From NCBI GenBank assembly GCA_963924565.1, contig OZ004614.1, positions 26,040,001 through 26,104,000 of the forward strand: a stretch of DNA of 64,000 nt, given 5' to 3'. Positions 6,305 to 50,400 of this stretch are shown in pieces (the stretch's first letter is position 1; each line of letters begins with the position of its first letter). A program made the translations under genes and the position numbers. This DNA is from Ascidiella aspersa (taxonomy: Eukaryota). The notes beneath the pieces were generated by a model, which saw only the letters and a list, made by a program, of their open reading frames with translations, ran no database searches and was not told where the DNA came from.

Positions 6305-9300
6305 TCACGGTGACGTGCTGACTGTGCTGCTCGAACCTGGACTCGTGTCGGATTTAAAACCGTCCGATCCTCCGTCCCTGGCGTATCCTCGTGACATTAC
6401 CGCGCACTCATCCGACCTGGCGAAACCTGGAGATAAAAGATGTTTTGTTGGAGATGACGTGGTTTTAAAGCAGGGGTTCTTAATCTGGGGCTGTGGACCC
6501 TATATGGGTACGCGGAATACTTTTAGGGGGTCCATGAAGGCCTAATGAAATCTAGTGTATAGTTTAAAATCCTGAATGAACTTGAAAAAAAATAGCGAAA
6601 GAAAAGCGATTAATTGAAAGAACGCTTTCATTCATTCTACTTCAATGAATTTAGACTGGATTCTAGCTGACGTACAAATTCGACCGAAAACTAGGTTTCT
6701 CAAGTCTACTAATTATGACGTCACCCTTGGTCCGCGCAACCTAAAAATGTATTTAGGGGTTGCATTGGAAAAAAAGTTGCTAATCCCTACCTTAAACACA
6801 AAAAACAACTGTTAAGTGAATCTCGTTCGTATTCGTTTAATCTAAGGCAGGGGTGACGAACACGTGGCTCGCGGGCACAAATGGCTCGCGGAAGAATTTT
6901 GTGGCCCGCGAAGCATTCGGGTGAAACAAATGCAGTCTTTGAAGTTTCTTTCACCCGCTTCTACTCTTTGCGATGCGATATGAAAAGCTGATAGCCTGAT
7001 TGAATAACGCGTATATCATGCAGGAATCGTAGGAACTGTTGTGTAAAACCAAACAGTAACCATCAATCGAAATTTCTCATTGAGCAAAAATTTTCATTAA
7101 ATGTTTATTTGTTAGTTCTTATTTACTATTTCATATTTCAATATTGCGTTAAATAATTTCAGCTGTATGGTTCGCATGGGTTTTAATTAGTAAAAAAAAA
7201 AAAAGTAAAAACTTGTGCGGCCCGCTTACTCAGAGGTAAATGACAAAGTGGCCCGCGACGGCAAATAGGTTCGTCACCCCTGATCTAAGGTTTAGGAAAA
7301 TGTGTAATAAAGTTTAAAATACCTGTAAAAAAGTTGTTTTATAGCGTCAATAAATTGAATTGATATCTCAATGAAAAAATAGGCAAAATAAGACAAAATT
7401 ACGGAATAAGACAACATACCAAATTAAATAACTTAAATATTAGGTTTCAATTGATCTCTAAAGATTTGTCATTGGCCTAAACAACTTTAACACATGAAGC
7501 ACTGAAAGAGTTGTTTTAACTTTATACTTGGAACTATTACTTGGAATCGTTTCAACTCGGCGCGAAAAAAATGCCATGACGTGGTTCAAAATATTTAAAA
7601 ATCCAGTTTGGAAAGAGTTTTTCCGTTGCAGTCTGTTTTGGGGAATAATAGTTTACATTTATCTGCGGTCCAGGTTATTTATCAAAAAGTCCCATGAAAA
7701 GAGCCGTAAGTTTCCGACCATGGACAAACACATTTTCTTCATGCCTTTCAATTTTTTGGGATTCTAATTTTGCTCTATTAGTAAGATTTGAATTGAACAT
7801 TGGTTAGAGCTGATGTGCATAGTTAAATTTTCATATTCTGTGATGTTACAGTAAGCCACTACGCGAAAATGCAAGTAAGGGTTGCCCCGCAATCTATTTA
7901 TTTTTGAAGTAGGTTTCCGTAAGTCAAAAAAAGTTGCGAAGAGCTGTTGTAAAGTAACGGTCACTTACCATCACTAGTGTCCAGTTGGTCAAACCTCTGC
8001 TGGACACAACCGAGTCTCTTGTGGTAAACATCAGGACCCTCTTGAAAGCTTCTTTCCTGTTTAAAATGCCCCCTGTAGCCGTAAAAGTCCCGTTCCACGC
8101 CGCTGCTGTCGTACAGTCTCCTCTGCCGATCGTAGGGGTGAAACCGATACCCCTGGCACTCAGCATCGGCGATCCCAAGCCCGTCCGAGACTCGACCGAC
8201 CACGTGGTCACTGTTATGTGGGACTCTCTTGTAGTAAAAGCTGCTGGAATCCGCGCTGTTTTGCTTAATATGGCTGTTATTTGAAGCCTGGAGCCTCCTG
8301 TTCGAATAAATGCACGTTTCCGGGTAAAAGTACCTCCACTCATCCGACCTGCCGTCGCCCGAGCGTTCCTCTGCTCCGCTTTGATACGTGCGCGCGAATT
8401 CTTTGTTTGCGAACATACACGACGAAGATTGCTCGCTCAAACAGGCGGTTCGCTTCTCGGGGATTCCCCGTGACTTCTCCTCGCCCGATTTTGTCCTGGG
8501 GCTTGCGACCAGGTCGCTTCTCACGTCATCCTGGATGGAATCGTCCGAAGAGTAGTGAGAGGAAATTTTCTCCTCCTCTTCATTGTTGGGAGGAGAGGAG
8601 AGAGGAGCGCTCTTTGTGCTCTTCGTTTTTCTCTTCTTTGCCTCTTTTTCTACTCCGAGCAGCTTCTGTAGATTTTTGATGTACTGGATGGCACCGCGCA
8701 ATGTCTCCACCTGGTGGGAAACGTGGTTTGGGTAAAATTTATATTTTTTGGGGGGAGGGTGAAAACTTCAGTTCAAAAAACTACTAAATTGGAAAGTTAA
8801 ACGACGCAATGATCTGTTGGAGTTAGAGTTTGATTAATGCTTGTTTTTTGCGCCTTAGCGTTTCGACAAGATATTGTCGTTCACCTTGCTCAGTCTCTTA
8901 TTTAAGGGTTGCATCAATACTTGTGTAAGGCAACAATCCCGGTTTGGCCGAGGTCGTCATTCCGAACCTCACTGCACAAGATACCTTAGGAAAGGCTTTA
9001 TCAGCCAGCCTATTTAGGACGATGTGATGTGTGGAAGCTAGGCCAGTCTAGACAAAATACTGTGGTGAGGTTCGAACTCACGACCTCAGACGCTCTACCA
9101 ACTGGGCCTTTCTTCGCGTTACTTGTTTTTTAAAACGACAGCCATTGATGTACGATTTAAACGGATACCGGTTGCGATCATTGTTTCATTACCAGAACCT
9201 TTTTAAACGTTTTTCATTTTTTTTCAATAGCCATCGATACCAGTATCGGTTTTAATCTGATATTATCGTTCACCTTGCTGAGTCTCTTCTCTGTGAATTC

Positions 9301-9657
9301 CTCGGGCAGATGTTCCCTCAGTCTCGCGTATCCATCGTTCACACACTTCACCCTCTGTCGTTCCCTCTCATTCCGTTTCCGTATAAAAGCAGGCTCAAAA
9401 CCGTAATCGTAGACTCCGTAAGCTCGAAAGGGGAAGTAGGGAAGCCTGGAGGCGAAAGCTGCGGGGTCTGAGGCGTACTTCGGGTCCAGGTAGCTCTCAA
9501 TGCCGCCGCTGAATGTCGGGTGAAGTTGCTGTAGGAAGAAAGCGTCTCGATACTGCGGGGTTTGGAAGCAGGGTTCGCCGCGTGGGTGCTGGACAGTGGC
9601 CGATGCCACCATCTGTTGCATCGCTGCTTGGTGGTGGTTGTAAGACGCTTGCTCCAT
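6305..9657 (-). CDS. Achaete-scute family bHLH transcription factor, class b (ASCL3/4/5-like), 3 coding exons, ~415 aa
   Basis: Exons 9657-9274, 8710-7969 and 6426-6305, all GT-AG with compatible phases (0, 1). Splicing rebuilds YGVYDYGFEPAFIRKRNERERQRVKCVNDGYARLREHLPEEFTEKRLSK|VETLRGAIQYIKNLQKLL, close to the vertebrate ASCL3/ASCL5 bHLH. Exon 3 reads GFARSDECAVMSRG...STSP*. If intron 2 is retained the protein stops at 7961. Confidence 0.93.
6471..6790. mobile_element. Decayed hAT-type MITE
   Basis: Starts CAGGGGTTCTTAATCTGGGG...GGGGTCCATGAAGG; similar segments at ~28790-29040 and inverted at ~52690-52766. Confidence 0.5.
6848..7282. mobile_element. hAT (Charlie-like) MITE in ASCL intron 2
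   Basis: Perfect 14-bp TIRs CAGGGGTGACGAAC/GTTCGTCACCCCTG and perfect 8-bp TSD ATCTAAGG (6840-6847, 7283-7290); subterminal GGCCCGCG motifs. Confidence 0.9.
9059..9104 (-). repeat. Internally deleted tRNA-like repeat fragment in ASCL intron 1
   Basis: CTGTGGTGAGGTTCGAACTCACGACCTC...CGCTCTACCAACTG matches the family with the anticodon arm missing. Confidence 0.6.
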
Positions 9658-21662: not shown

Positions 21663-24600
21663 ATGGCTGAAGTAGAATCATGTAAGTTTTTATTTGCTTT
21701 GTTTTAAATTTAAACCATTCTTTTTTGTTAAGATCTATTTAATTTGCTCGAGTCATTAGCCATCCTAATAAAGTTACATCTGCATAAATTAATTTTAACA
21801 ATTTAACCAAACATTTTGCAAATGTCAAATATTTGTTTTATTTAATTGCAACTTAACTATAGGCTCAGGTCTAACAGTCATATTCGTTTTTTGACAAATT
21901 GTTCTCTAAATTAAAAAAAAATAGTAACACTACATTCTTTAAACAAAAAAAACATAAAAATAAATTCCATATTCGCCGACAATGCAGATGTAGCAATCTA
22001 GTATTAGGCTAGTGAAAATTTTTGCCCTACGCGAGCGTTTCATGGAAAAACTTACGTACAATATCATTTTTTACATATCAGTAAATGTAATCGAAGAGGA
22101 GTTACTTCCAAGTCTACATTACTATTGTCGTAAACAATCGTGAAACATAAGATTGTAAACAAACAATCGCACGCTTCCTTATATAGCTGTTTATAGACTT
22201 TTCTTGTGTCCGTTGCGCAAAGCGTAAAATGCTTTTATATCGTTCAAGTTACTTAAACTTTCATTTTCTAGGGTGCGATAAGACTTACAACGCATTTGGC
22301 TAAAATGATTTTATTAAATGGAATAAGACATACTGAAAACGTAATCCACACATTTTTATTAAAAAGTCAAAAATACAGTTTTTTTGGTGTGTGTGGGGGG
22401 CATGGGTATGTACCCTCCCTCCTGAATCCGTCCCAGTTAGTGAGAATTAACTCACGACAAATAACTAAAACTTTATTTACTTTGCTTACCAGACGATCGC
22501 ACTCAGCGTATCAACAACTTGGCTCAGCACAAGAAAACACCTCCAGGCTTCATCGAGGATAGGAGGTCAGTTTACTGGGTCGACAAGATTCCGCCGGCAC
22601 CCCCAACTAACTGCGGTAAGTAGGTTTATGTTTGTACACACATTTCACTCTTTGAAGGCGAACTTGTTTTTTGAGACCTTAAGTTGGTTAAGGCTGATCC
22701 CAACAGAGTTGTAAACAAGTCTTTTTAAACCGTCATAAGTCCCAGTCCGAATCAACTTCAACTCTAATCTTTAAAATAAAAAAATATATTAAACCAATAA
22801 AATTAAGTAAACCCATACATTATGAGGAATAGGTTAGCCAAAAAAAAAAAAACTCTACATATAGCAAGTTGTACTACAACGTTAAGCCATTATATCAAGA
22901 TTTTTTCGAAACATTTACAAAATTCTGCGTACTTTTCCATGGGCTTTGGTATTTCTGGATTCCTGCAACCTCCAGCCATTATGGCCCTAAATGTCAATTA
23001 CAATCGACCATTGCAGTTTTAACCCCGCGTCAAATGGAGCTTGTTCGTTGCAAGCCGATCGACCGCGAGTTCCAAGCTGACCGACCCTCGCCCATCTGGC
23101 AAGTAAGCCGCGCAGCTCTCAACTTCCCAGAGAGGGAAAGGCTCAAGCAACTCTCTGAGTCCAAAGCGTTCCACCAATCGTGGAAACCGATGCGTTCTGT
23201 GTACACTGTGGTGCCTGACGCTGCTAAGACGGCGACCCCAACCAAAAGGTACTAGCATGTTCGATACTTTGTATTGCACTGCATTGTCGCCTCTGTTAAC
23301 CTTACACAATGTAGTATAAGTTCTTTATGGCTTATTTAGATGTGTAAGCATTCTGTAGCTCGCGATCAAAGGTCACTGAGCACATAGTGCTTCCAGATCG
23401 TAGTTGTCTTTACTTTAGTTGGTGTTACTCCCTTGTCGCGATAGGTGATCGCATTACTGCGTATTTGGTTCTATTGTGTCGTTGGTATTAAAACTATGGT
23501 TTTATAGATTTATCTGCTTTAGGTATGTTGCTTTTTAGGTCTTATTGTGTGTTTTCACTGCCTAGTCGTAGCAGGAGTTGGCGCTGTTAGTTACTTTAAG
23601 TGTTTGGCGATGATGGTAAGCCTACTCTGATGCTGTTTCTTATTTAATAACATTGTTCTGTATTTATTTACAAGTTATTCGAATGAGCTATGAATCTATT
23701 GCCTTATAAATAAATCCCAGTACCTTTTTAAAGACTTCAGTATCGGATCGGATCCATTAGTTTACATGGTGCAAATTTAATTCAGCAATAATATAGCCAT
23801 CCAACTTAAAACCAAATACGTAATTTGTAAAGTAAAAAAAAACAAATTTGCAAGAAATCAAACTACATAAAATTTATATTATTACGTTTTAAATGAACAA
23901 ATGGTTTCTATAGCGCAGTAAAAAGATTCCACACCTTATTCCCCTGTTCAAGCTACTTTGTGGGGCAAACGTGGTTTTCGGAGGCAAATATTGCCGAAAA
24001 CTTTAACATAATCACATGAAACCAACGTTGATTGTTGGGGTACACTCCTTTGAGAAATGCGTTTGGTTTTTCTTTACCAAATTAGTTAATTGAAATTTTA
24101 GCAGCAAACTGTTAACTTTAAACAGTGGTCACGAACGTTTTCTCATAAAGGGATGGATAAAAAAAGTCTTAAATAACCTAATTCTTGATATACGACGGAA
24201 AATTAAAAGAACAATAACAAGCGTAGTTATAGCTTTAGAAAATTGTCCTGCATTTAAAAATTTCTTTAAAATTTAGATTTGAATTGCATCGACAACATTT
24301 TAACTGCTTCATTTAAAAAATATTTCGCCGTCTGAATTAATTGACCCGATGGTCCGTAGTTTAGTGACCACTGCCTTAAAACATAAAGGCCTATTTCTCA
24401 ATTACACTGAAAAAATCATCAATATAAAACTATAGACACGCTATCTAACAAAAATGCCTTTGTTAAACCACTATTACGTCACAATAGGCTTGTGGAGCTG
24501 GCGCGCCCGAAGCAGTTTGACCCCCTGTTAATCAAGTCGAACAGCTCATGGGATTGGGGGGAGTGGCGCAGTGACGTACCAAGGGAATCACTCACCCATA

Positions 24601-25552
24601 TGGCGTCTGCAAGGTTGGAACAACTGGCCGAAGCCAAACCAACTCCTGCGGCTTACAAGGACAACAGAACTGTCATGTGGCCAGTTTCAAAGGGGGCTAA
24701 GACCGCGCAGGTGGGATACTGTGAACGATATTACGGTACTCGATATTTATTAGATTCTCGATATTTGTTTGTTATCGATATTTGTCGAATAGTCGATACT
24801 CTGCATTTGTCCGATACTTTATACTCGATATTGTTTTAATAACCGATATTCGATATATTACCAATATTACGATACTCATATATTTTTCAATACCCGATAT
24901 TGTCCGATACTCGATATTTGTCTGATCATATTGTCCGGTATTTGTGTAGTAGTCGATTCTCTGTATATGCCCGATACTCGATAAACAAAATATGACCTAC
25001 CGGCTCACTACTATTCTTAATATTTTCCAAAAATCTTGTTTGATACTCCAAATATTTCATTTAATCCGGTACTAGATACTTGTTGTCTTCTACTCGATAC
25101 TTTGGGTAATTAATATTTTGGGGCATTTGTCTGAATGTCCGAAATCATGTTTTCTAAAATGTGCATGGAATAATTTTTATGTCGTGTAACGTTTCGTTTT
25201 TTTTTTTGCACAAAACCTTCGAAGTGAGTCTTTAAATGCCTTGCTGGTAGTTTACCTCTGTTATTGTTTAATGATGTTTAAAATATCTTTAAATATCAAG
25301 CCCAGTTACAATTTTTGACGGTCAATCTTGCAAACCTCGTAAATTCTTGACTTTCGCCTTAAAACTAACTTTGATTGTGTCTAGCCTTCGACCAGGCAAC
25401 AACAGCTTGCTCGTCCGAAAACCCGCGCCTCCCTCGACCAAGATTACGATCCTTACAAGGTTTCTTTCGCCGCTAGGAACGCTGTTGCTTCACCACGTGT
25501 CGGCGAACTCGCTACAGCCATTCCGCGCAAAGTCAGGGCCAAGAAGGCTTAG
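21663..25552 (+). CDS. THEG: THEG/SPMAP2-like protein (testicular haploid expressed gene repeats), 5 exons, ~254 aa
   Basis: Exons 21663-21681, 22493-22615, 23017-23248, 24488-24710 and 25385-25552 total 765 nt, open through all GT-AG junctions. Repeated THEG-type motifs: RINNLAQHK..DRRSVYW, DRPSPIWQVSRAAL, RLVELARPK, ASARLEQLAEAK, WPVSKGAK, RQQQLARPK, ASPRVGELATAIPRK. The first exon is the least certain, with an alternative ATG at 21657. Confidence 0.85.
24123..24373. mobile_element. hAT-type MITE in intron 3 of the THEG-like gene
   Basis: TIR CAGTGGTCAC/GTGACCACTG; degenerate TSD ACTTTAAA/CCTTAAAA. Internal sequence resembles ~17205-17472 and ~33710-34000. Confidence 0.6.
24725..24985. repeat. 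Degenerate array of CGATA(C/T)T motifs
   Basis: Repeated TACTCGATAT/GTCCGATACT words, similar to the 57-bp unit. Confidence 0.6.
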
Positions 25553-27170
25553 GGAAATCACCGCCCGGGGCATTTTGCAGTAGCAGTCTGTTTGTAAATG
25601 AATGTTGTTTGTTGTATAAAACATAGATCCATGTTGGCCTTGCTTTCTACATAAATGCCTGTTCTATAGTAAGTACCTGTTCATAGTATAGCATGAATTA
25701 CTTGCCCGTAAACGTATGTTGTTAGGTAATATAGATATTTGCCAAATAGTTTAAACCCAACTTACCAGGGATGTAGTTTTGTTGATAACTTGCCGTTAAA
25801 GAATCAAAAGTGCCTTACCTAACAATCCGCTCTTACCTAATGTTATAGTGGTTTCACAAACCACTAACTTGATCGCATTTCGCTCATATGGTTCCACAAG
25901 AGGTAAGTAATACACATTACACAGCTACGCCAAGCCCAGTCCATCCTATCCGCTTTTTAAATATTATATTTTCGCTCCACGTTTTGTTATTTTCCACAAA
26001 GTTAGGTCCGATTTCAACACAGTTATAAGGTCTATGTGTAGTTGAGACGTATTATGTTGAAGGTTAAAATCTTATTTAAAAATCGTAAAGAAATAATTTA
26101 TAGTTTTTCCATGTCTAACAAATGTCTTTCCCTCTACTTGTTTCATCCCAAGATTTCTGCGCTAACCATGCTTTAATGTGTGCTTTATGTGACGGCAGGA
26201 TTACTTCACTGGGGCCATATTAAATCCCAAATCCCAGTCCTTCTGTTGGGGATTAGTTGTTCTAATCCACCTTGACCAATCCTTTCATCCAAAAACGCAG
26301 GAAAATCCTTTTGTGTGAGTTTCTTGCTTTTCCATGTTTTTATGCGACGAACAAAACTCATAGCGGTGCCATATTTTCCATTCTACATACTAATTGCTTA
26401 TGTTTTTCCCGCAATCGCCTGCCTAAAAAGATTAAGTCCAAATGGTTATATTGCCAAACTGCATTTTGTTGCCTAACCTTTTAGTGCTTCACAATTATGA
26501 GATTACCTTCTTTTAAGCTGCGAACGAATGTTACTAGTATTTAAATTGTTTACCTTTGTTTTTCGTGGGTGTTATTTAGGAATAAATGTATATTGAAGAA
26601 AGTTCTTCTTTCGATTAAAATTAACATTTCATTACTTTAACAATACGATTTAATATAACTGCAATTATTGAGTAGTTAAAATAATTCTAATATCACCGTT
26701 AATATTTACAACGGTACTTGTTTTCGTTAAGCAAAAATATTATTTTTTTATTTCGTTCGAAGATATAAAAAAAATTGACGATTTAAGCATCTTTAAATAT
26801 TTCTCGTTATGGCTTTCAAATTATCCTTCAAAACAATTTGGTACTGCATTGAAATCTATTCTAGTTTTAGTTTGTATGATATTTATTTTTTTTGCAAAGC
26901 CTAACATAAAAAGTATATTGCCTTTAAATGTGTACTTTACTTACTTTATATAAAACTTTTATGCCAATGCTAATAGAAACGTCGGTTAGTAAACAAAGTT
27001 CGTGTATTAAGCAGAAAAAAGCACGACGCGAATTTGGAAAGAACGTAATCGACGTAAATAGAGAAGGTATAGTGTTGACTTTGTACAAGAAACAAAAAGC
27101 AAGTTGAAGCAAATTTTTACAGCAATCCCATCTTCGGAAATTGGCTCAGCGGTCATCCGATATAGTGGTA

Positions 27171-30100
27171 TTACCCTTGTGTCATCCGATCAGAGCGGTC
27201 ACTGAATAAAAACAAAATGTTATTGAAGAGGTTTCAATTATTCGCAATTTACAACTTTTATGCGAAAAACTTGATATATTGGTTGATGGATAAGTGTTAG
27301 GGTTGTTCTGTGCTACAAGGAGTCTTTGAAAACGTGAGTTGTTGAAAAATCTTTGCTCAAGATTTTGACCTTGGTCAAGATATGAACTATCAAGTTGATA
27401 AAGACACAGCACACAGGTAACACCTTTTACTGTCTAGACTGGCAATAAACATAACAGTGCACAATTTGAGTGTTGTAGGCTAAAAATACTTTACTGGTAG
27501 AGAATCCTACCACGCATTCAAATAATTATCAAATCAACGCACATTTTTTAGGTTAGGGTCCGGTTTAGCGTTTGGGTTCGGTTGGTTCAAGTGTTGTTAT
27601 TTTAATACTAACAGTTTGCGATTTACTAGTTTCGTTACTGAAAACAAAAGTGATAGGATTCTAAACCAAGGCCCAATACTCTGCTACAAATTTTACTATC
27701 ATTAGTAACGCATTAATAACACTTAATATCATTAGTAAAAAATAATTGAATAATATAAACATTGCAGTATTTGGCCATATGCGCCAGCCCAGTACTATAT
27801 GGCCATATACCAGTGTTTTGTAAATCAAGTTTTCTCACTTAAGATTGCAAAAGCAATTTTCCGCCAAAGTTTTCTAATCTTACATTTTAAAATACGCCTC
27901 AATTAAACACAAGCATTATGACGTAAAAATTGCTATTGTACAATTAGAACGTAGAAACAATTAGCCTTTATACGGTTTATGCTTTACTTCACAACACACA
28001 ACAATTAAGCTTTTTGATTAGCAAACTTACTTTGGGTTTCTTCTTGCCCTGCTTGGATCGATAAACCCTCGGATTAGTTTGTTTCTGTCAAGCCAGTTCT
28101 GGAAGTACTTTGTTCTTCCGTATCTGCAACAAAACGAAAACCTTAACCCAGTTGCAGTTACGCATATACTCAACGCTAGAAATAATACCGAAAGGGTAAA
28201 TTAAAATTGCAGTTAATTTTGCTAAAGTTAGTAAATCCTAAAACACTTTGAGCAGTTTAAAATACAAGTTTACTCTTTCGGCCGCTTGACCTAATAAGAG
28301 TTCGTTTAATTAACGTTTTCGCTTTTTATTTTTACGTAACAAACACTAAATTCTACTCTTACATGTTGAAATATACTTGCCGTAAAGCGTCATCAATTTC
28401 TGTTTAAGCCGGGTACGTTCAGCATTGGATAGCATTTGATGAATTCCATAATAATGTAAGGGTAGAGTTCGAATATCAAATCCTATCCAATGCCGAACGT
28501 ATCCGGCTTAAACAGAAATTGAAAACACTAAAATATTCGTGGCTTCTTGTTACATTGATAATAAATGCGATTGCCGACTGCCGTGAAATATCGTATCATT
28601 TAGGCGATTTTTGTCTTTGGAGGATTTATAAAAAGGCCTACTTTAAAACCTAACCAAAACTATTTTTTTTAAGTTGATGAAACAATAAACGTTGAAATAC
28701 TTACGCGTTCGTGAAAACTGCTTCGGGGCCAGACCGCTTCGTATCCTTTATGTCGTAATCCCTGCAAGCACATTAAAGTAACGGTAATACACGGGTTCTT
28801 AAGCTGGGGGGTCCGTTGACCCTTTGGGGTACGTGGAAGAGTTTAGGGGGCCCATGAAGGTATAATTGATTCCTAAATGTATTGTGTGAAAAATCTTATA
28901 CCATTTTTCAGCAAAAAAAAGTTTATTTAAAAAAACATTTTGGCGCCTTCATCGTAGGATTTAAACTCTATTTTATATTTTCTTATTTGTTAGATGAAAA
29001 CAGCAGGTTTCTTAAGTCTTATTGTTTTATGACGTCACTATAGCTACACAAAAGTGCAATACTTAGAACTTCGTAAACTGAATTTAAAAAGCATTTTTAG
29101 TTCGCCAATTGTTTTCTTTACATTTACATGTAAATTTAAAAGCTACCTTTGATGCATCATCTGCCTGAGCATATCCTGCTGCTTCCTGTATAGCAAGTAG
29201 CGGTTCAGGTAGTTGTTGTAGTTGTTGAGCTCCATCTGAGCGTACCTTTTGTCTACAACCGACGGTGGGTAGCCTTGTCTTGGGAAGCTGAAATAGTTCG
29301 GTTAGTTACTACGAGTTTGCCAATTTTTTTTTTTTGAAGTGACAGCGGTTAGGAGCCGATACCCGATGCCAAGTTTTAGTATCGGTACTCTTCCGATACT
29401 AGGGTGGTATGGGTGCCGATCGTCTACGAAATAATATAAGAGTTTCAACATTGATTTTCGATTAAACGCGATTTGAATTTAAAAAGGTATTTTTAAGAAA
29501 TGAGTAGGTTAATGACTTAAGGTGCCCAAACTGCTAAACGTTAAAGTAAATTTTGATGTAATTCCACGTCAAAATTACATTTAAACCTTTTGATTTTACC
29601 TAATCTGCTTGAAATTTGAAGTCAGCTTAATAGTGACGTCATTTGGTTTCGGATCGCGACACGTTTCACTTAAAATATCGGGAATCATTATCGGAACAAA
29701 ATTTCAAGTATCGGAAATTACTAAACCTGAATATTAAGCAAAACGGTCACCATTGAAACGAAATTATTGCCGATAAGTGATTAATATACTCACTTTCCTA
29801 AATCAATTAATTAAAAGGTTACAATTCTTCAAGGAAACACGGAATTAAGCCAAATTAAACTGGTTTGTCAAGTTTTGTAAATACTGGATTTTTTTAGTTT
29901 TGCGAAACGAACCCTTAAGGATTGTTTTTATTAACTACAACAGCCACGTGTGGCAGTAAAGAGCTTACTAGGCCGCTACTTTATTTTTTTTTAAATTCGG
30001 CACAAACAAGATGTATCCCGAAAATAAACAGCTGGTCAAATTACCAAGCAGGACAAATCAATGGCTTGGTCGGTTAATAAGCGTGCTATTGCAATCAAGA

Positions 30101-30980
30101 TATCGGAAGTTGACCTGTTTAAATTGAAGGAAATGAAGGTAAAATCGAAAATCTGAAATTGTAAATAATAAACGACCCTTTAAATCGATGCGTTGAAAGC
30201 ACAGCAATTAAAAAACGAACGGTTTTTGCGATTTAATCCAGGCTGGTTTGTAAATTTCAAAGAAATATTCATTTTTAATCGTAGTTATAAAGGCATTTAA
30301 ACGCAAAAGCAAATTTCGGTCTAATTACACCGTTAAAAATATTACCAATAAACTTGGTAATATTTGCTTATCTTTTTGCTTATTTTTAAGTAATGACGAC
30401 ATTTGGTATCGGTATTTTACAAGTATCGAAATAAAACAAGTATCGAACACTTCTGCTTACTTGTAAGGTTGCTGTGCGTCCCACGGGTGATATGCGACCT
30501 GCTGGTCGTACATCGGAAACTCGGCCCCACTTTGGGGGGGATTTCCCGCCCCATCCCCCGCTGATTCATCGACCCCAGCCCGGGCCCAGTTCATCGCGTA
30601 ATCCCTGTACTTTGGATCGACGTTCAGCGCTTTACTGCAAAATTTGAAAGAGATTTTCTGATATTTGTTCTATTTTCCATCTCTATATAATATTCAAAAT
30701 GCAAATATTTTAACAATATAAAAAAGTGTTAGCAATTAAAAAAAAGTATTTTATAAGCTATGGCATGAAAAATGTTGTGAAAAGTATAAATAAAACACAT
30801 TATAGCTTTGAAAATCGTAACCTTGAAAAAATCAACTTGTTTACTTTAAAACTGTGCAGTTAGAACGACTTACCCGACTGCGAAGCTGGTGTTTGTTAAC
30901 GTCACAAAGATTACGACAATGGCGATTCTTCCCAGGTACTTTCCCTTGGTTGATCGTAAAATTTGATTCCATAAATTCAT
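27171..30980 (-). CDS. Secreted prepropeptide, putative secretin/glucagon/GHRH/VIP/PACAP-superfamily-like precursor (~191-200 aa)
   Basis: Exons 30980-30874, 30634-30461, 29287-29147, 28761-28705 and 28123-28031, with a probable last exon 27201-27171; every intron is GT-AG, phase 2. Protein: MNLWNQILRSTKGKYLGRIAIVVIFVTLTNTSFAVG (basic then hydrophobic, signal-like) ...SVVD-KR-YAQMELNNYNNYLNRYLLYRKQQDMLRQMMHQRDYDIKDT-KR-SGPEAVFTNAYGRTKYFQNWLDRNKLIRGFIDPSRA-RR-NP... Without the last splice it stops at 28027. Confidence reflects the gene model; the family call is less sure. Confidence 0.8.
28393..28522. repeat. Long inverted repeat (48-bp arms, 3 mismatches, ~34-nt loop)
   Basis: 28393-28440 is the reverse complement of 28475-28522. 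Confidence 0.9.
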
Positions 30981-32910
30981 TTTGTTTTTCTATTTTACGA
31001 CTTTTGACCAGTCAAAGGATAAAGCAGGACGTCTATATTTTGTTTAATTTACACTAAAAAGCGTTATTGTGTCTGTGAAAAATGATTGCTGTGTAAATTT
31101 GCTCGCTACCATATTGTAAGCACGTCCGACTAATATTTACTTCCGATAAGCAATGAAGGTTGTAAAGCGAAAGCGATTGAATGTATTGACCCAATTATTC
31201 AAGGTTTGGGTAAAAATACAAACGCCGCGCGCATGACAGACGTGAATTGAGATAGATCGTTTCGAGCCACCGCAAACAGGGAAGCAAATTTATATTTAAA
31301 TCGGCCACAAATTGGACCGTTGTAATAACATGGCTCAGCAATCAGCGTAAATATAAATTTAGAGCCACTATACCTGCTTTTTTGATACAATACCAATTCA
31401 GCAGCACTTAGTAATTTTAAATACAATTTAACCGAATGTCTAAAGAAATATATTCTAACACATACTTGAACATTAGGCATTATGACGTTGACAATGCCTT
31501 TTGTTTGTTTACTTGGAACATTCGGACAATGCGATCCAGTTTTGTTTAGATCAGGGGTCGCCAAACTACGGCTGAATCCGACCCTCGACAAATGTTGTAA
31601 AAAACAAAATTATTATTAGATTTTAAACGGGAAAGTTTGTCAGATGCATGACTAAGCCAAATTTTGGTGAGGTTGCAAGTTAAACGACGAGTTAATTTGA
31701 AATATAGCGCTTCCTGTCATCTTTAAACTTTCCCATTAAACACAAAAGTATTCGTGGACCCAATTTGAAAACCACTGCTTCAGGCTTTATTATTGTTATG
31801 ATCGATTTAATAGGTTTGTTTTGTCTTGCATCGTCTATATATGAAGGGCTTCTTAACTCTTTCTAATTGAATCTTAGTGTGTATCTAAAAAAGAACAAAC
31901 TAATTTTTTAAGATAAAAAAGTTTTATTAAAAAAACGCTTTGGCGGTTTTTCCATAAATGTAACCCATTGCAGTTTCACATTTGCTGGAGCGAGATATTT
32001 CAACTTTCCGCGACCGAAAGTGTTTTTGCGATTTAGGTGCCGACGTTTTCCGTTACGCGTCTATTGTGAACAAACCTTTACTGTTTACCTCACAGCACCA
32101 ACCATCAAGTTTCGACCTTCTAACATCCAGTACTTTTAAGTCTGTAAATTTATCTGTCGCTGTATACAAGGAAAGACTAGCTTTTCATAAATAGTTCGAT
32201 TTCAAGAACTCTTGAAGGAGTAAAACGTTCTATTATTTACTAAAATATACGTCGAGGATAAAGTTGAACATTCCTAGCGGCAATTTATGGTAAGGCGAAA
32301 TGACAGATTTCAACAACCATAATAAAAAAACTCATTTTACCACCGTCTGTTTGCCCAACACGTTGTTCACAATTCCATAGAAAACTATAAATAAATCGAC
32401 GTTTATAGATTCCTGCCACTTTTTTACAGTAACGAAACTTGTCAAACTTAAAATTGCAAGGAAGAAATAAATATGATAAAACAAAGATAATAATAATATG
32501 TCTAATAACCCAACGCTGACTCTCACCCTAAAACAAATAATGTAAGCAATATAAAACCCCGAACGAAATGAGGTTCTGGACCAGCGCCTAAAAATTTGTT
32601 TATTTACAGTAACAAAATCAGGCGCCAAAGTTGGAGTTGCAAACTAGGAGAATAAATACAATAATAATACTTGACCCACCCAAGCGCTAATTGCATCCTA
32701 TGGCCTAAAGAATGTAAGCAATATAAACGCTCTGACGAAGATTCTAATTCAGCGCTTAAAGTTTTACACGACAAACCTTTCGTTACTGCCAAAAAAATGT
32801 GGTAGGACTCTGGACCAGCGCCCTATACTCGCCTCCCGGTTAGCTGCAGCATCTGGCAACCCACAACCGCCACAATATACACAGTTCATCACAACCTCGA
32901 TATTCCGCCA

Positions 32911-44400: not shown

Positions 44401-47400
44401 GTTATCTTAAATATTATTGGTAGAAAAAGTTTTTCTGGTTTATTTTAAACGCTTTTGCAGTTTACGCTTTTCGTGAAATTTCAATATATTTATAACGTGC
44501 TCAGTGCTCACGTTTAAATGGATGAATTTGGGGAAACAGTGCTGTGGTTCGAACGAAGTATATATGCATATTTCTTTAAAGATAAATATACTGTTGCTGC
44601 CATTGTTTAACTTAAAAATCGTTTTTCTGACCAAATTTATTGAAGTACCGACGTTTCGATCATCTTTTCGGGCATTTTTTTAATTGCAACTATAGGCGAG
44701 AAATATTTGTACCAGACAACAGTAAAAGAAAAACAACTTCTTTTAAGATTTTTTAATATTGTCTGACCTGAATTGCTAGCTGTGCTAGAGTATTTTAAAC
44801 TGTTACTGATGAGGAATTAAGGTCGACATTTATCTCGCAAGGGACAAGGTGATTTCCAATATCACCTATTCAGTGCTACATCTAATATTGAATGTAAGAA
44901 GAACGATTTAAGTTCGCGACTGTCATCAATGTGTTTTAGTGTAACAACGTTAAACACAATACAGAGCTCTATTCTCAGGCTTCCATTGAACAGTAATTCG
45001 ATATTGTAATAACACAATGATGTATAGCTCTGGGTTTTAAAGTGTTTGTAAGTAGAACACCACAACGTTGTTTTGTTGTTGTGTTACAAATAGAACTAAT
45101 TACTTGCTTTATTCCTTAAAACCCTTGTTTTCAAAGAATTAAAATGAACGTCAAATAACTTTATCTATGTCGTTAAGATGCAAACTTAAGTTTAAGGTAA
45201 TTTTTTTCAAAAAACAATTAAAGTCATTATTAGATCAAGTCATTTTAAATCAAGTCTTTAAAATAAGTAAAACTTTAAACCATTAAAATTGGTAAACTCG
45301 TGAGAATATGAGCAATAATTCAACTAAAAAATAACAAAGCAAAAATTATTTCAACCCAAGTTATTTGACAAACAAGCCAAAGTCAAGTTAGCTTGACCAA
45401 CAGAATTAAGTCAAGTCATTACAAACAGTGGCTTAAGTCATTACAAACAGTGTAGTTTAAGTTTTGGTGCTAAACAGTAGTTTCATCACTTTATGTTGGA
45501 CATGCTCCGTTTATTAAAAAATGTGTTTTTTGGCGAAATTTTAGCTTAAAATCATATTCCCCTCTTGAAGACCCTAAATCTGCACGATTGTTCAAAAAGC
45601 GGCAAAAAATCCGCATGAAAAATACTGTTATCTATCTCTGTCAAAGTAGTCCTGATAAAATTAGTGCTCATAATATGCCATCACCGAAATTAAAGGGAAA
45701 AGACATTACAGAAATTCGTTGCTTAAACAAAATACAGACAAGCATTGAAAAATATACTTTACCCCTGTTGTGCTGGTCAAAGCCTACATTCATAATTAGT
45801 GTTTCTCAACCGCGGCTCCTGTTGTATTTTTAGCGGCTCCCAGTAGGGTTAAAAAAATAACATGATTTATGAGAAGCATATTTGCACGCGAGTTCGCTCA
45901 ACAGCAGCAGGTGTTATTACATTAATTGTTTGATTACTGAAAATGTTCAAGCCCCCAAAATAACAATACTGGACCACCCCTGCACATAACATACCGCGAT
46001 GCCAAAACAACTTTCGAAGTAAATTTGCCTTATTTAGCAAGAAAATAGAACGTTTCAGAGTAAATGGTTAGATAAACATTTTGCCTTCTTTGATGTGGTT
46101 TATTAATTTTAAATTTATTTTCAATAAACTGCTTGATCTTTTTGCGGTTTTAAAATGGACAGTATAATTTTAACTCACATGCTTACAAAGATTGAGAACC
46201 ACTGCTCATAATATACCGCCCTTGGAAACGACATTCGCGAAATTAATAGCCAGTTCTCGATTTTATTATGTTCCGTCAACCTCTGTGTATATATCTGGTT
46301 CTTAATACTTATCCTTCAGCCAATATCCTACACTGTACGCCCCGCCCGGCCACCCGCAGAGTCGCTGTAACAAGGTTGTTGGGAGAAATGCTGATAGGCA
46401 AACAGCTGATTCCAATAATTTCGTTATATACGAGACAAGCTGCTACAACCAGATGTTGCGAATGGAACAAATCTTGCGTAACAAACGCAACAAATTGGAA
46501 GCAAAATAATTGCATTAGGGTGGTCGATTTAAATTTGTAGTCGGTCATTACAGATCTGAACACTTAAAAATAAAACGCTTCAAATGAGTAACAACAAAAA
46601 ACATTACATAAAAGTGATTTGAAATGCAATTGACCCCAATCACGTGTTGAGAGATGTCCGATAATATGGGATCGGAGCCGATACCCGATGCCAAGTGGTA
46701 GTATCGGTACTCGTCCGATAATATCGGATCGGAGCCGATACCCGATGCCAAGTGGTAGTATCGGTACTCGTCCGATAATATCGGATCGGAGCCGATACCC
46801 GATGCCAAGTGGTTGTATCGGTACTCGTCCGATAATATCGGATCGGAGCCGATACCCGATACCAAGTGGTAGTATCGGTACTCGTCCGATAATATCGGAT
46901 CGGAGCCGATACCCGATGCCAAGTGGTTGTATCGGTACTCGTCCGATAATATCGGATCGGAGCCGATACCCGATGCCAAGTGGTTGTATCGGTACTCGTC
47001 CGATAATATCGGATCGGAGCCGATACCCGATTCCAAGTGGTTGTATCGGTACTCGTCCGATAATATCGGATCGGAGCCGATACCCGATGCCAAGTGGTGG
47101 TATCGGTACTCGTCCGATAATATCGGATCGGAGCCGATACCCGATGCCAAGTGGTTGTATCGGTACTCGTCCGATAATATCGGATCGGAGCCGATACCCG
47201 ATACCAAGTGGTAGTATCGGTACTCGTCCGATAATATCGGATCGGAGCCGATACCAGATTCCAAGTGGTGGTATCGGTACTCGTCCGATAATATCGGATC
47301 GGAGCCGATACCCGATTCCAAGTGGTGGTATCGGTACTCGTCCGATAATATCGGATCGGAGCCGATACCCGATTCCAAGTGGTAGTATCGGTACTCGTCC

Positions 47401-50400
47401 GATAATATCGGATCGGAGCCGATACCCGATGCCAAGTGGTAGTATCGGTACTCGTCCGATAATATCGGATCGGAGCCGATACCCGATACCAAGTGGTAGT
47501 ATCGGTACTCGTCCGATAATATCGGATCGGAGCCGATACCCGATACCAAGTGGTAGTATCGGTACTCGTCCGATAATATCGGATCGGAGCCGATACCCGA
47601 TACCAAGTGGTAGTATCGGTACTCGTCCGATAATATCGGATCGGAGCCGATACCCGATACCAAGTGGTAGTATCGGTACTCGTCCGATACTCTGGTGGTA
47701 TCGGTGCTAAATCGATATTAGAACTTCAGCCATATTTCGCCACCCAACGCAACCATTTTACCTTGCAAGGTAGAATTTTAAAAATACGGCATGCGATTTT
47801 TTTGTTGGTAGCATTTTGAGTTGTGACATTTTTCCAGGTTGAAGGCAGGTACAGAGCGGGGACTTCTTTCCACAAGCGGAACTGTGGTGGAGGGAAGCAG
47901 CTCCATCAACTTCATGGAGCAGAGGAGAGGAGCAATGAAGAGATGGTGGGAGCACGCCAGCAACACAAAGAGCAGGAGCACTCCTTCACAACAGAAAGTC
48001 AAGGTACGGGGCTTGGAGATGGTTTGGCTTGCGGCACCCTACAAAAATTATAAATAGTTCGCGGCACCCTTGCTCGTATTTTCGCTGAGTCATTAACTGT
48101 AACGTCACAAAAATTTGTATCAAGAAAGAATTGAAATCCTAAAAGAATTTGCAATATCTCTCAGCACCCTTAGGCGTAGAAAATGGCCGCCCTAGAGTGC
48201 CGCGGCAACCCAGTTAAGAACAATTGACTCGGAGTTTTAGATCACAATAAGGAAAAGTAGGTTGTTTGGCGTTTCAAAGGGCAATTTCGTTTTTAAGTTT
48301 GGCGTATGATGAATATTAAATCCCATAGAGAATTAGGTAGCATTTTTGAACGTTTCGGATAAATGTTAAGATAACGGAGGTTGTAGTTGGAAGTAGAATG
48401 AACATCAAAGCCCATACACAAGCAGGAAGCATTTTAAACGTTTCGAATAACTCTTTATTCAGTTTTTTTAACGTCACCTATACTTTTGTATGAGCTTAGA
48501 TATTTATTCCACGGCTAACTACAACCTTTGCCATAACTTTTTACACCTTCGGCCGTCTCGGATCTTTTGCAAATGTTAGTTTTCAGGAGAGATTAATATG
48601 TATCTTTTAGAACAGTGTTTCGCTAATCTCTACCCATGGTGCACGTCTCTAAATTGGGCAGCTCACGCATGGATAACTTTAGTCTCACCAACAAAAAGTT
48701 GATTTTAGAATTGGGTGGTCAAAGCTTCGCATTTGGACTTACGCTTTTATTCTAAAAATTAAACAAATTTCCTAATTTTTTTATCATCATGCAAAGTTAA
48801 TATGTTTGATCTTTTTAAAGTGGTTTAATAAATAAAGCAGTTAAATGTTATTTGGATTTCATTTTCAGTTAATTCAAATTTTGACACTCCAGGTATATAT
48901 AATGCTGAGAAACACTCTTAGTATAATACCTATCTTTATCATGCGTATTCTATGTTAACATAAGTCATTTCTCACCTGTTCTTAGGTTGTGGAGTCGAGC
49001 AACTACGTTCTGCCGCAAATACCCGAGAACGGTGACGTCGGTGCTGGTGACGTAGGCCATGTTGTGTTCGACGTCACAGCAGCCAAGTTCCCCCCGATCA
49101 CGCCCTTCCACCTTCGTAACGACCCGGGTAAGCTGATGGTCCAAGATTGGAAGGATCTGAGATCAAGTATTATTTGCGCATTCTTGTCGGCCGCACACTA
49201 GTGTTGTTTAAAAAAATAAGTAACGTTATTATAATTAAAGTTATTACATATTCAGTTAATGCGACGGTTAATCTGATGCACGAACGGAGCGTCTAATAAT
49301 TACAACATTCCTCTGTAAGTAGTATATTTTTTTCTAGGGTAAAGAGTTATTTGGCTGCACAGTGTACATGGCTTTATAGACCACCCCTGCTTCCAAATTA
49401 ATGTTCGTTTTAACGTAAAACAGCAAGGTATTTCTCCTGTGGGTCGAATCATATTTCCGATATCTTGCGATTACGATTTTTAATTTGTGTTTAACGCAAT
49501 CTCAGCGTAGGATTTTGCGTGAAGGCTAAATAAGGCTTAGTAAAAAAATAGTGGACCACGTATTGATTGGCTTAAATCATTTATAAAAAGCATCAATTTC
49601 TATCGCCGATAAACCGCGTCATTATACGTCATAGGTTAATCAGGTGTCACTATAGAAAGACAAATTGTGTTGATTCTCGACAAGCTTTCCGCACAACAAA
49701 GCAATTAAAATGCACGAGTTGCTTCCATTTCCACTTTGACCTACAAAGAAGCACGGTTGTACGAAAGCTTGTCGAGAATCAATACACTTTGTCTTTATAT
49801 AGTGCCACTAGATTACCCTATTTATAGAATTGACGCATACACCCAAAGATTATACGTCATGTCATCATGACGTCATGGATTAGGTTTCCTATTTTTTTTT
49901 GTAATTCTACAATTAATATATACTAATGTAGTTGTGATCTTTTTGTTTAGATCATCTGTTAAAGACTTCAGAAATTGTTCAGCCTGGCACCCCGACGATT
50001 GTCAGTGACATCTCTGGCACCATGCCACTCGTCAGTGACGCACAGGCAAGTAACATCGAAGTTTGGTGGCATGCGGAAGATTTTTTCGCTCTATTTCGAG
50101 TTGCATCACAGCCAAGCCCTATTAAAACTGAAATTAACTCAAAATTGGCATGGGGGTATATTTTGTGTGTTTAACTCTTGTATTGAATCCTACTAGACGG
50201 GCCCAGCGATATTCGATTTGAAAGCAATGCTCGCTGATTTCTCAGGTTTTATTTATTACAAAAAGTAAACTTCCCCACAGCGTATGCGTCTTTTAGGTAG
50301 CAGACAAAAATTCGTAGGTTCAGACGCAATAACCTATAAGACCAAAACATATGACTATGCAGTCAAAAGTTCAACTATGGCTGAGGCTAAAAATTTAAAT

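Follow-up and report, generated by a model that had tools for sequence, protein, structure and literature searches.

A 64,000-nucleotide stretch of the Ascidiella aspersa genome (contig OZ004614.1, positions 26,040,001 to 26,104,000 of the forward strand; hereafter the window) very probably contains a real protein-coding gene that is unannotated, and this gene probably encodes a processed peptide precursor. Read on the minus strand of positions 27000-31100, five short exons spanning 30980-28027 join in one frame, giving a coding sequence of 576 nt (191 codons and a stop) and a product of 191 residues. The product combines a signal-type N-terminus and an acidic spacer with two tandem peptides that are delimited by dibasic sites. 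Motif likeness makes it plausible, though unproven, that these peptides are ligands of class B1 receptors, that is, of the secretin/parathyroid hormone (PTH) superfamily type.

All four introns are bounded by GT..AG and all lie in phase 2, cutting a codon after its second base. Three of the four donors carry GTAAG, and every acceptor is a CAG preceded by 7-9 pyrimidines in 12. The internal exons are consequently all symmetric (phase 2-2), so that each could be skipped in frame. The gene features are listed below in window coordinates, in the order of transcription, with a slash marking the splice cut.

31033..31041, minus strand: possible core promoter, as suggested by a reading of the sequence: AAAATATAG, TATA-like, lies some 55 nt upstream of the ATG
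30874..30980, minus strand: exon 1, with the start ATG at 30980 and A at -3; signal-type peptide; donor CGG/GTAAGT, phase 2
30635..30873, minus strand: intron 1, 239 nt, 24% G+C, phase 2
30461..30634, minus strand: exon 2, 174 nt, 59% G+C; acidic Gly/Pro/Gln-rich spacer (pro-region); acceptor TTTTGCAG/T; donor CAA/GTAAGC
29288..30460, minus strand: intron 2, 1173 nt, 33% G+C, phase 2; contains a very high-copy repeat at about 29340-29425
29147..29287, minus strand: exon 3, which closes the spacer and carries the first KR (29250-29245) and residues 1-32 of peptide 1 (29244-29149); weak donor AAG/GTAGCT
28762..29146, minus strand: intron 3, 385 nt, phase 2; interrupts peptide 1
28705..28761, minus strand: exon 4, 57 nt; peptide 1 ends here with its final 8 residues (28761-28740), and the second KR follows at 28739-28734; donor CGC/GTAAGT
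28733-28705, minus strand: start of peptide 2 within exon 4, its first 9 residues and a split codon, with E-A-V-F-T-N at 28724-28707
28124..28704, minus strand: intron 4, 581 nt, phase 2; cuts the F-T-N-A/Y core of peptide 2 and holds an inverted repeat
28027..28123, minus strand: exon 5, remainder of peptide 2 at 28123-28045, with Y-F-Q-N-W-L at 28107-28090; RR at 28044-28039
28029-28027, minus strand: 3' end of exon 5, where the C-terminal tripeptide that follows RR gives way to the TAA stop

Four independent intrinsic measures converge on the same five segments. G+C content is 41-59% in the exons (50% overall), 24-33% in the introns and 37% in the window, and by codon position 1/2/3 it amounts to 0.49/0.385/0.62. 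For exons 2 and 3, the excess of third-position over second-position G+C (GC3-GC2) surpasses the 95th percentile for the window's 1,175 open reading frames (ORFs) of at least 30 codons, and does so in the proposed frame only. Under a codon table trained on 8,379 in-frame codons from kinase and myosin exons of the same genome, the log-likelihood totals +44 bits, or about +0.24 bit per codon (exon 2 +0.34, exon 3 +0.36, exon 4 +0.33, exon 5 +0.12, exon 1 -0.04), with the proposed frame the best of six in all five exons; for reference, window ORFs score -0.15 +/- 0.17 bit per codon and a neighbouring basic helix-loop-helix (bHLH) gene +0.21. Among about 80 minus-strand ORFs of at least 20 codons at 26.6-31.3 kb, scores above +4 bits are confined to the ORFs of exons 2, 3 and 4 and, within exon 2, an ORF of 21 codons that reads in another frame. 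The gene is not a repeat, since its exons are single copy, with no paralogue of exon 3 or exon 5 in the 309-Mb assembly. Logan contigs of two other DNA runs place all nine of the indels listed for the gene span in introns, and no substitution among those listed falls within the 252 nt coding for the peptides. The initial annotation, which was made from the sequence alone, had proposed a hidden prepropeptide gene of five to six exons with two dibasic-flanked peptides. Gene structure and coding statistics support that gene well, and splice sites and the common frame confirm five of its exons; the sixth finds nothing coding-like at 27171-28026.

In that 3' region, searched for a sixth exon or a longer coding part, the minus-strand ORFs all score negative, including an 83-codon ORF at 27433-27185 (-20.8 bits). 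The TAA stop itself sits within a perfect, unused phase-2 donor, AAA/GTAAGT (28031-28024, minus strand), which resembles the four real donors; because a coding exon was not found downstream, this donor may be coincidental or may be left over from an exon that was lost. Intron 4 was likewise searched for a mini-exon whose inclusion would bring peptide 2 to canonical spacing; none was found, the sole weakly positive ORF falling in the inverted repeat. This repeat (28386-28529) consists of 55-nt arms that are 89% complementary and 34 nt apart, resembling a hairpin element of the miniature inverted-repeat transposable element type. The high-copy repeat of intron 2 belongs to a family with CCGATAC/TATCGG-type words, which recurs at 29640-29720 and 30400-30450 as well as at 29340-29425 and forms a tandem array at 46548-47710. 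Its Logan word depth is 1.4e5-2.8e5, versus about 50-100 in unique DNA, and RNA reads carry it on both strands; the 1.1-kb tandem array gives rise to long spurious ORFs in several frames.

The exon translations contain each of the precursor elements that had been claimed for this locus: a signal-like N-terminus, a proregion and two peptides bounded by KR, KR and RR, together with the strings EAVFTNAY, KYFQNWL and QQD and a YA start. Following the start Met, the N-terminus has four K/R and no acidic residue in its first 18 residues, a hydrophobic core of 10 residues (Kyte-Doolittle mean 3.38) that is too short for a membrane span, and a small-residue c-region. By the (-3,-1) rule, with small residues at both positions, it is predicted to be a cleavable signal peptide. 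Acidic residues are abundant in the spacer, as are Gly, Pro and Gln. Behind it, the three dibasic sites delimit peptides of 40 and 36 residues, with three residues following RR, and dibasic pairs are confined to the peptide borders, bar one internal RK. There is no cysteine anywhere in the product and no Gly-dibasic amidation signal.

Peptide 1 (40 residues) starts Y-A-Q and is cut by intron 3; peptide 2 (36 residues) starts S-G-P-E and is cut by intron 4. In peptide 2, E-A-V-F-T-N-A-Y begins three residues after KR and is followed further on by F-x-x-W-L, with the Tyr of the F-T-x-x-Y core arising only through the splice of exon 4 to exon 5. Single-sequence AlphaFold2 models predict residues 10-45 of exon 3 to be helical, with a mean predicted local distance difference test (pLDDT) score of 84.8, which corresponds to a helix through peptide 1. 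Residues 4-21 of exon 5, which form part of peptide 2, are also modelled as helical, here with a moderate mean pLDDT of 70 and again with no alignment supplied.

Several features of peptide 2 point to the secretin/PTH superfamily. Directly behind its convertase site it carries the activation core [DEQ]-[GA]-x-F-T-x-x-[YL], and peptide length, linearity and precursor layout all fit those of class B ligands. A DNA pattern for [DE][AG][IVTAM]FT[ND]xY has a single occurrence in the 309-Mb genome, versus 8 for the reversed control, a frequency of about 1e-8 per six-frame position (about 6e8 positions). Because the pattern is so rare genome-wide, a core placed three residues behind KR in a secretory precursor is unlikely to have arisen by chance, even allowing for the existence of many peptide families. 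The sole genomic hit of the pattern (L075, G000:C6:7334934-7334957, plus strand) reads D-G-T-F-T-N-T-Y, ten residues behind KR and with a stop seven residues later, in AT-rich DNA; it has no splice sites, G+C contrast or precursor context and is probably a chance occurrence.

Candidate receptors are encoded in the same genome. Tunicates are the sister group of vertebrates and possess PTHR/GCGR-type class B1 receptors. Here, class B1 extracellular domains are each distributed over several exons, four of which were located:

L008, G000:C2:34677798-34677905: class B1 receptor extracellular-domain exon; best solved relative PTH1R (5.1e-10)
L011, C3:22806317-22806421: class B1 extracellular-domain exon; best solved relative PTH2R (1e-6)
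L010, C8:20497274-20497405: class B1 extracellular-domain exon; best solved relative GLP1R/calcitonin receptor (about 1e-3)
L013, C3:21100577-21100669: class B1 extracellular-domain exon; best solved relatives VIP receptors (0.01)

The two best-scoring exons, L008 and L011, are thus PTH1R-like and PTH2R-like, so that the genome contains cognate receptors of PTH type. Two further loci, L009 and L014, resemble the HRM domains of adhesion G protein-coupled receptors. No authentic secretin-family ligand gene turned up when tunicate genomes and transcriptomes were searched in 2010 and 2020; for Ciona, which has PTHR/GCGR-like receptors, the literature names no PTH-family or other ligand of these, and a 2012 search found no TIP39 gene (PMC2880984, PMC3483286, PMC7251081, PMC11661445). 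Since the strongest receptor matches are of PTH type, a hybrid between PTH-type and secretin-type ligands is conceivable. We tentatively suggest, as a reading that is more doubtful than class B1 activity as such, that no ligand gene of the superfamily has been seen in a tunicate genome before this one, that peptide 2 combines a PTH-like S-x-x-E start and W-L...K-L tail with a secretin-type A-V-F-T-x-x-Y core between them, in a state near that of the ancestor shared by PTH-type and PACAP/glucagon-type hormones, and that it would be the natural agonist of ascidian PTHR/GCGR-like receptors.

A number of observations weigh against assigning the peptides to this superfamily, or against the gene itself. 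Sequence searches were blank throughout. Exon 3 matched nothing among 1.84 billion representative proteins, its own product included, which indicates that the gene is unannotated; a word-indexed search with exons 2 and 3 and two metagenome contig scans returned no relative. With query lengths of 31-57 residues, these blank searches exclude close, annotated orthologues only. Profile searches were made exon by exon, which divides peptide 2 between exons 4 and 5 and leaves the 32 exon-3 residues of peptide 1 whole. No exon matched any Pfam family, or any peptide chain in the PDB, at E<=10. For the two profiles proposed at the outset as checks on family membership, secretin/glucagon and PTH, the outcome was the same: the 32 residues of peptide 1, tested whole, do not match Hormone_2 (PF00123), and neither exon 4, exon 5 nor peptide 1 matches Parathyroid (PF01279). 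A six-frame genome scan with PF00123 gave five hits at chance level (best 17.9 bits, E 1.5), none of them at this locus. Genome-wide, PF01279 had no match at E<=10, in a scan that control genomes cannot validate, and CRF (PF00473) had none. The best PF00123 hit (L003, G000:C5:2431774-2431836, minus strand) is an AT-rich 49-codon ORF reading H-S-E-A-I-L-T-N-E-Y after P-R; it has no clear splice sites, dibasic borders or G+C contrast and is probably due to chance.

The peptides also depart from the family in detail. H1 and F6 are key residues of secretin-family peptides (PMC2880984). Peptide 2 has Ser, not His or Tyr, at position 1 and its Phe at position 7, and peptide 1 has Leu at position 6 and no F-T. 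The F-x-x-W-L of peptide 2 lies six residues nearer the N-terminus than glucagon-type spacing (F22, W25, L26), and in neither peptide does the maximal hydrophobic moment, a test for an amphipathic helix, rise above that of shuffled sequences. Vertebrate secretin-family peptides are each contained within a single exon (PMC2880984); here introns 3 and 4 split peptides 1 and 2, although one exon per peptide is a weak criterion in intron-shuffled tunicate genomes. From the two other DNA runs, four substitutions are listed in exons; each falls in the spacer, and three are non-synonymous. Membership in the secretin/glucagon/GHRH/VIP family, as the initial annotation had it, is therefore not established: the F-T-x-x-Y core behind KR stands, while position 1 and spacing do not agree with it and the exon-level profile searches give no match.

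Transcription data add to the points on this side. In RNA sequencing run X3, of which 1.18 of 19.7 billion letters were read (about 6%; tissue not stated), the exon bins hold no read with its first mate on '+', and no splice junction is listed. What few reads there are at the locus carry their first mate on '-', and introns receive them as much as exons do. Just upstream, on the plus strand, lies a THEG-repeat (testicular haploid expressed) gene (window 22869-25549), three ORFs of which contain PF14912. The stretch covered has one well-expressed feature only, the presumed 3' end of this gene at 26300-26496 (depth 13.8), and every read there has its first mate on '-'. As such reads alone cover the 3' end of a plus-strand gene, we infer that the library is first-mate-antisense; the sparse reads at the locus would therefore represent plus-strand read-through, antisense to the model. 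The missing reads are weak contrary evidence, as a peptide gene may be active in few neurons or endocrine cells, and the sample evidently included testis.

Much of this evidence could also be accommodated by a real prepropeptide gene whose peptides are lineage-specific tunicate signals, acting through another receptor class or in a non-hormonal role, with the class B1 likeness a product of coincidence or convergence. Gene structure speaks for such a gene equally well, and the blank profile and sequence searches, the N-terminus offset by one residue, the mid-region that is six residues short and the unremarkable hydrophobic moment also count in its favour. We consider this rather unlikely nonetheless: the 8-residue core is very rare and is placed just behind the convertase site, where an activation motif is expected; the peptides match class B ligands in their length, helicity and absence of Cys; and receptors with no detectable ligand are present in the genome. 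A small secreted protein that is never cleaved, such as a helical extracellular or tunic/mucus protein in which the dibasic pairs are incidental, is very improbable. There are only three or four such pairs, and neither a Gly-dibasic amidation signal nor repeated peptide copies, as this alternative would have it; the pairs nevertheless mark off, behind an acidic spacer, two units 36-40 residues long, as prohormones usually have them, and no domain is detected.

That there is no functional gene here at all, the model being either a series of short ORFs of raised G+C that chance has lined up with splice-like sequences, or else a decaying, unexpressed relic, is improbable as well. The RNA sample shows no model-strand read or junction, no homologue was found, the exon 3 donor is weak and exon polymorphism within the spacer is not visibly below the intron level. 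Moreover, among 9,916 ORFs in 0.55 Mb of the same genome, 2.9% have their terminal stop within a strong phase-2 donor, so some such donors are expected in any 4 kb. The pairing of a strong phase-2 donor with a phase-2 acceptor that has a pyrimidine tract occurs in only 0.8% of these ORFs, however, and at five segments, all in the same frame, splice sites, G+C steps and coding score fall together. That frame runs unbroken from an ATG through the signal peptide to a stop, and no frame-breaking variant is listed in the two other DNA data sets.

Under the reading that we prefer, of a peptide precursor with class B1 ligands, a single-copy tunicate gene would be transcribed and translated into a 191-residue secretory prepropeptide. 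The signal peptide would be removed, and prohormone convertases would then cleave at KR, KR and RR, yielding 40- and 36-residue peptides that are linear, Cys-free, non-amidated and largely helical. Peptide 2, and perhaps peptide 1, would be a very divergent ligand of the secretin/glucagon/PACAP-PTH superfamily, and its target may be a PTH1R-like, PTH2R-like or GLP1R/calcitonin-receptor-like class B1 receptor of the same genome. The E-A-V-F-T-N-A-Y segment of peptide 2 would enter the receptor core, and the helix that follows would bind the extracellular domain. Should this hold, the gene would represent a new and very divergent member of the family and a candidate ligand for tunicate class B1 receptors, and it would show when, and from what, vertebrate gut-brain hormones such as glucagon, VIP, PACAP, GHRH and PTH arose. 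Were the peptides to act otherwise, the tunicate peptidome would still gain a new precursor of long peptides, from a kind of gene that annotation misses. In either case, the question of the tunicate ligand becomes directly testable, now that the genome offers a candidate whose cleavage sites are defined and three or four receptor genes have been located.

An achaete-scute-type bHLH gene occupies positions 7964-9657 on the minus strand of the window, about 18 kb from the peptide gene. Its ORF at 9217-9657 has an HLH domain (PF00010, 2.7e-10), and the ORF at 7964-8710 continues the gene. In human, ASCL2/ASCL3, SCT and PTH all lie on 11p15.

Among known systems, the PACAP/GCG precursors of amphioxus (bfPACAP/GCGa, b and c) contain several tandem peptides of 32-33 residues (PMC9049855, PMC7251081). 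Although they share only 10-15% identity with human PACAP, these peptides are active on a class B1 receptor (PMC7251081, PMC9049855). The present gene is similar in encoding tandem peptides in a precursor from an invertebrate chordate, and the alternatively usable exons of the amphioxus gene may have a counterpart in the phase 2-2 internal exons found here. It differs in having five exons rather than four, with introns inside both peptides, and receptor activity, predicted here, has been shown for the amphioxus peptides.

Vertebrate prepro-VIP/PHI, prepro-PACAP/PRP, proglucagon, GHRH and GIP share with this precursor a signal, a spacer and tandem, dibasic-flanked, linear helical peptides, theirs being about 27-44 residues long. 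The A-V-F-T-N-x-Y of peptide 2 resembles what we take to be the corresponding segments of VIP (D-A-V-F-T-D-N-Y) and GHRH (D-A-I-F-T-N-S-Y). Its F-x-x-W-L presumably has its parallel in glucagon and GIP, and the Y-A start of peptide 1 in GIP and GHRH; all of these likenesses serve as leads rather than as tests. Unlike the vertebrate PF00123 precursors, this one has Ser1, a core shifted by one residue, an F-x-x-W-L that comes six residues early and peptides split by introns. Peptide 1 further differs from PF00123 peptides in that it is without the F6-T7 core, and no exon-level match to the profile occurs.

PTH, PTHrP and TIP39 provide a second point of comparison, as peptide 2 is non-amidated like them. 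Its S-x-x-E start (presumably comparable to S-V-S-E of PTH), the G-[KR] at positions 12-13 and a W-L followed a few residues on by K-L, an order that we take to be that of PTH and TIP39, are PTH-like, again as leads and not as a test. The W-L of peptide 2 comes three residues early relative to this family, the F-T-x-x-Y core is foreign to it, and PF01279 has no match.

A tunicate precedent is the set of 'PACAP' cDNAs that McRory and Sherwood (1997) reported from Chelyosoma productum, whose peptides are 85-96% identical to human PACAP (PMC7251081, PMC2880984). These peptides have never been found in any tunicate genome, and their authenticity has been questioned (PMC7251081, PMC2880984). Two tandem peptides of the secretin family were claimed there for a tunicate precursor; the Ascidiella gene, unlike those cDNAs, is encoded in the genome and is highly divergent.

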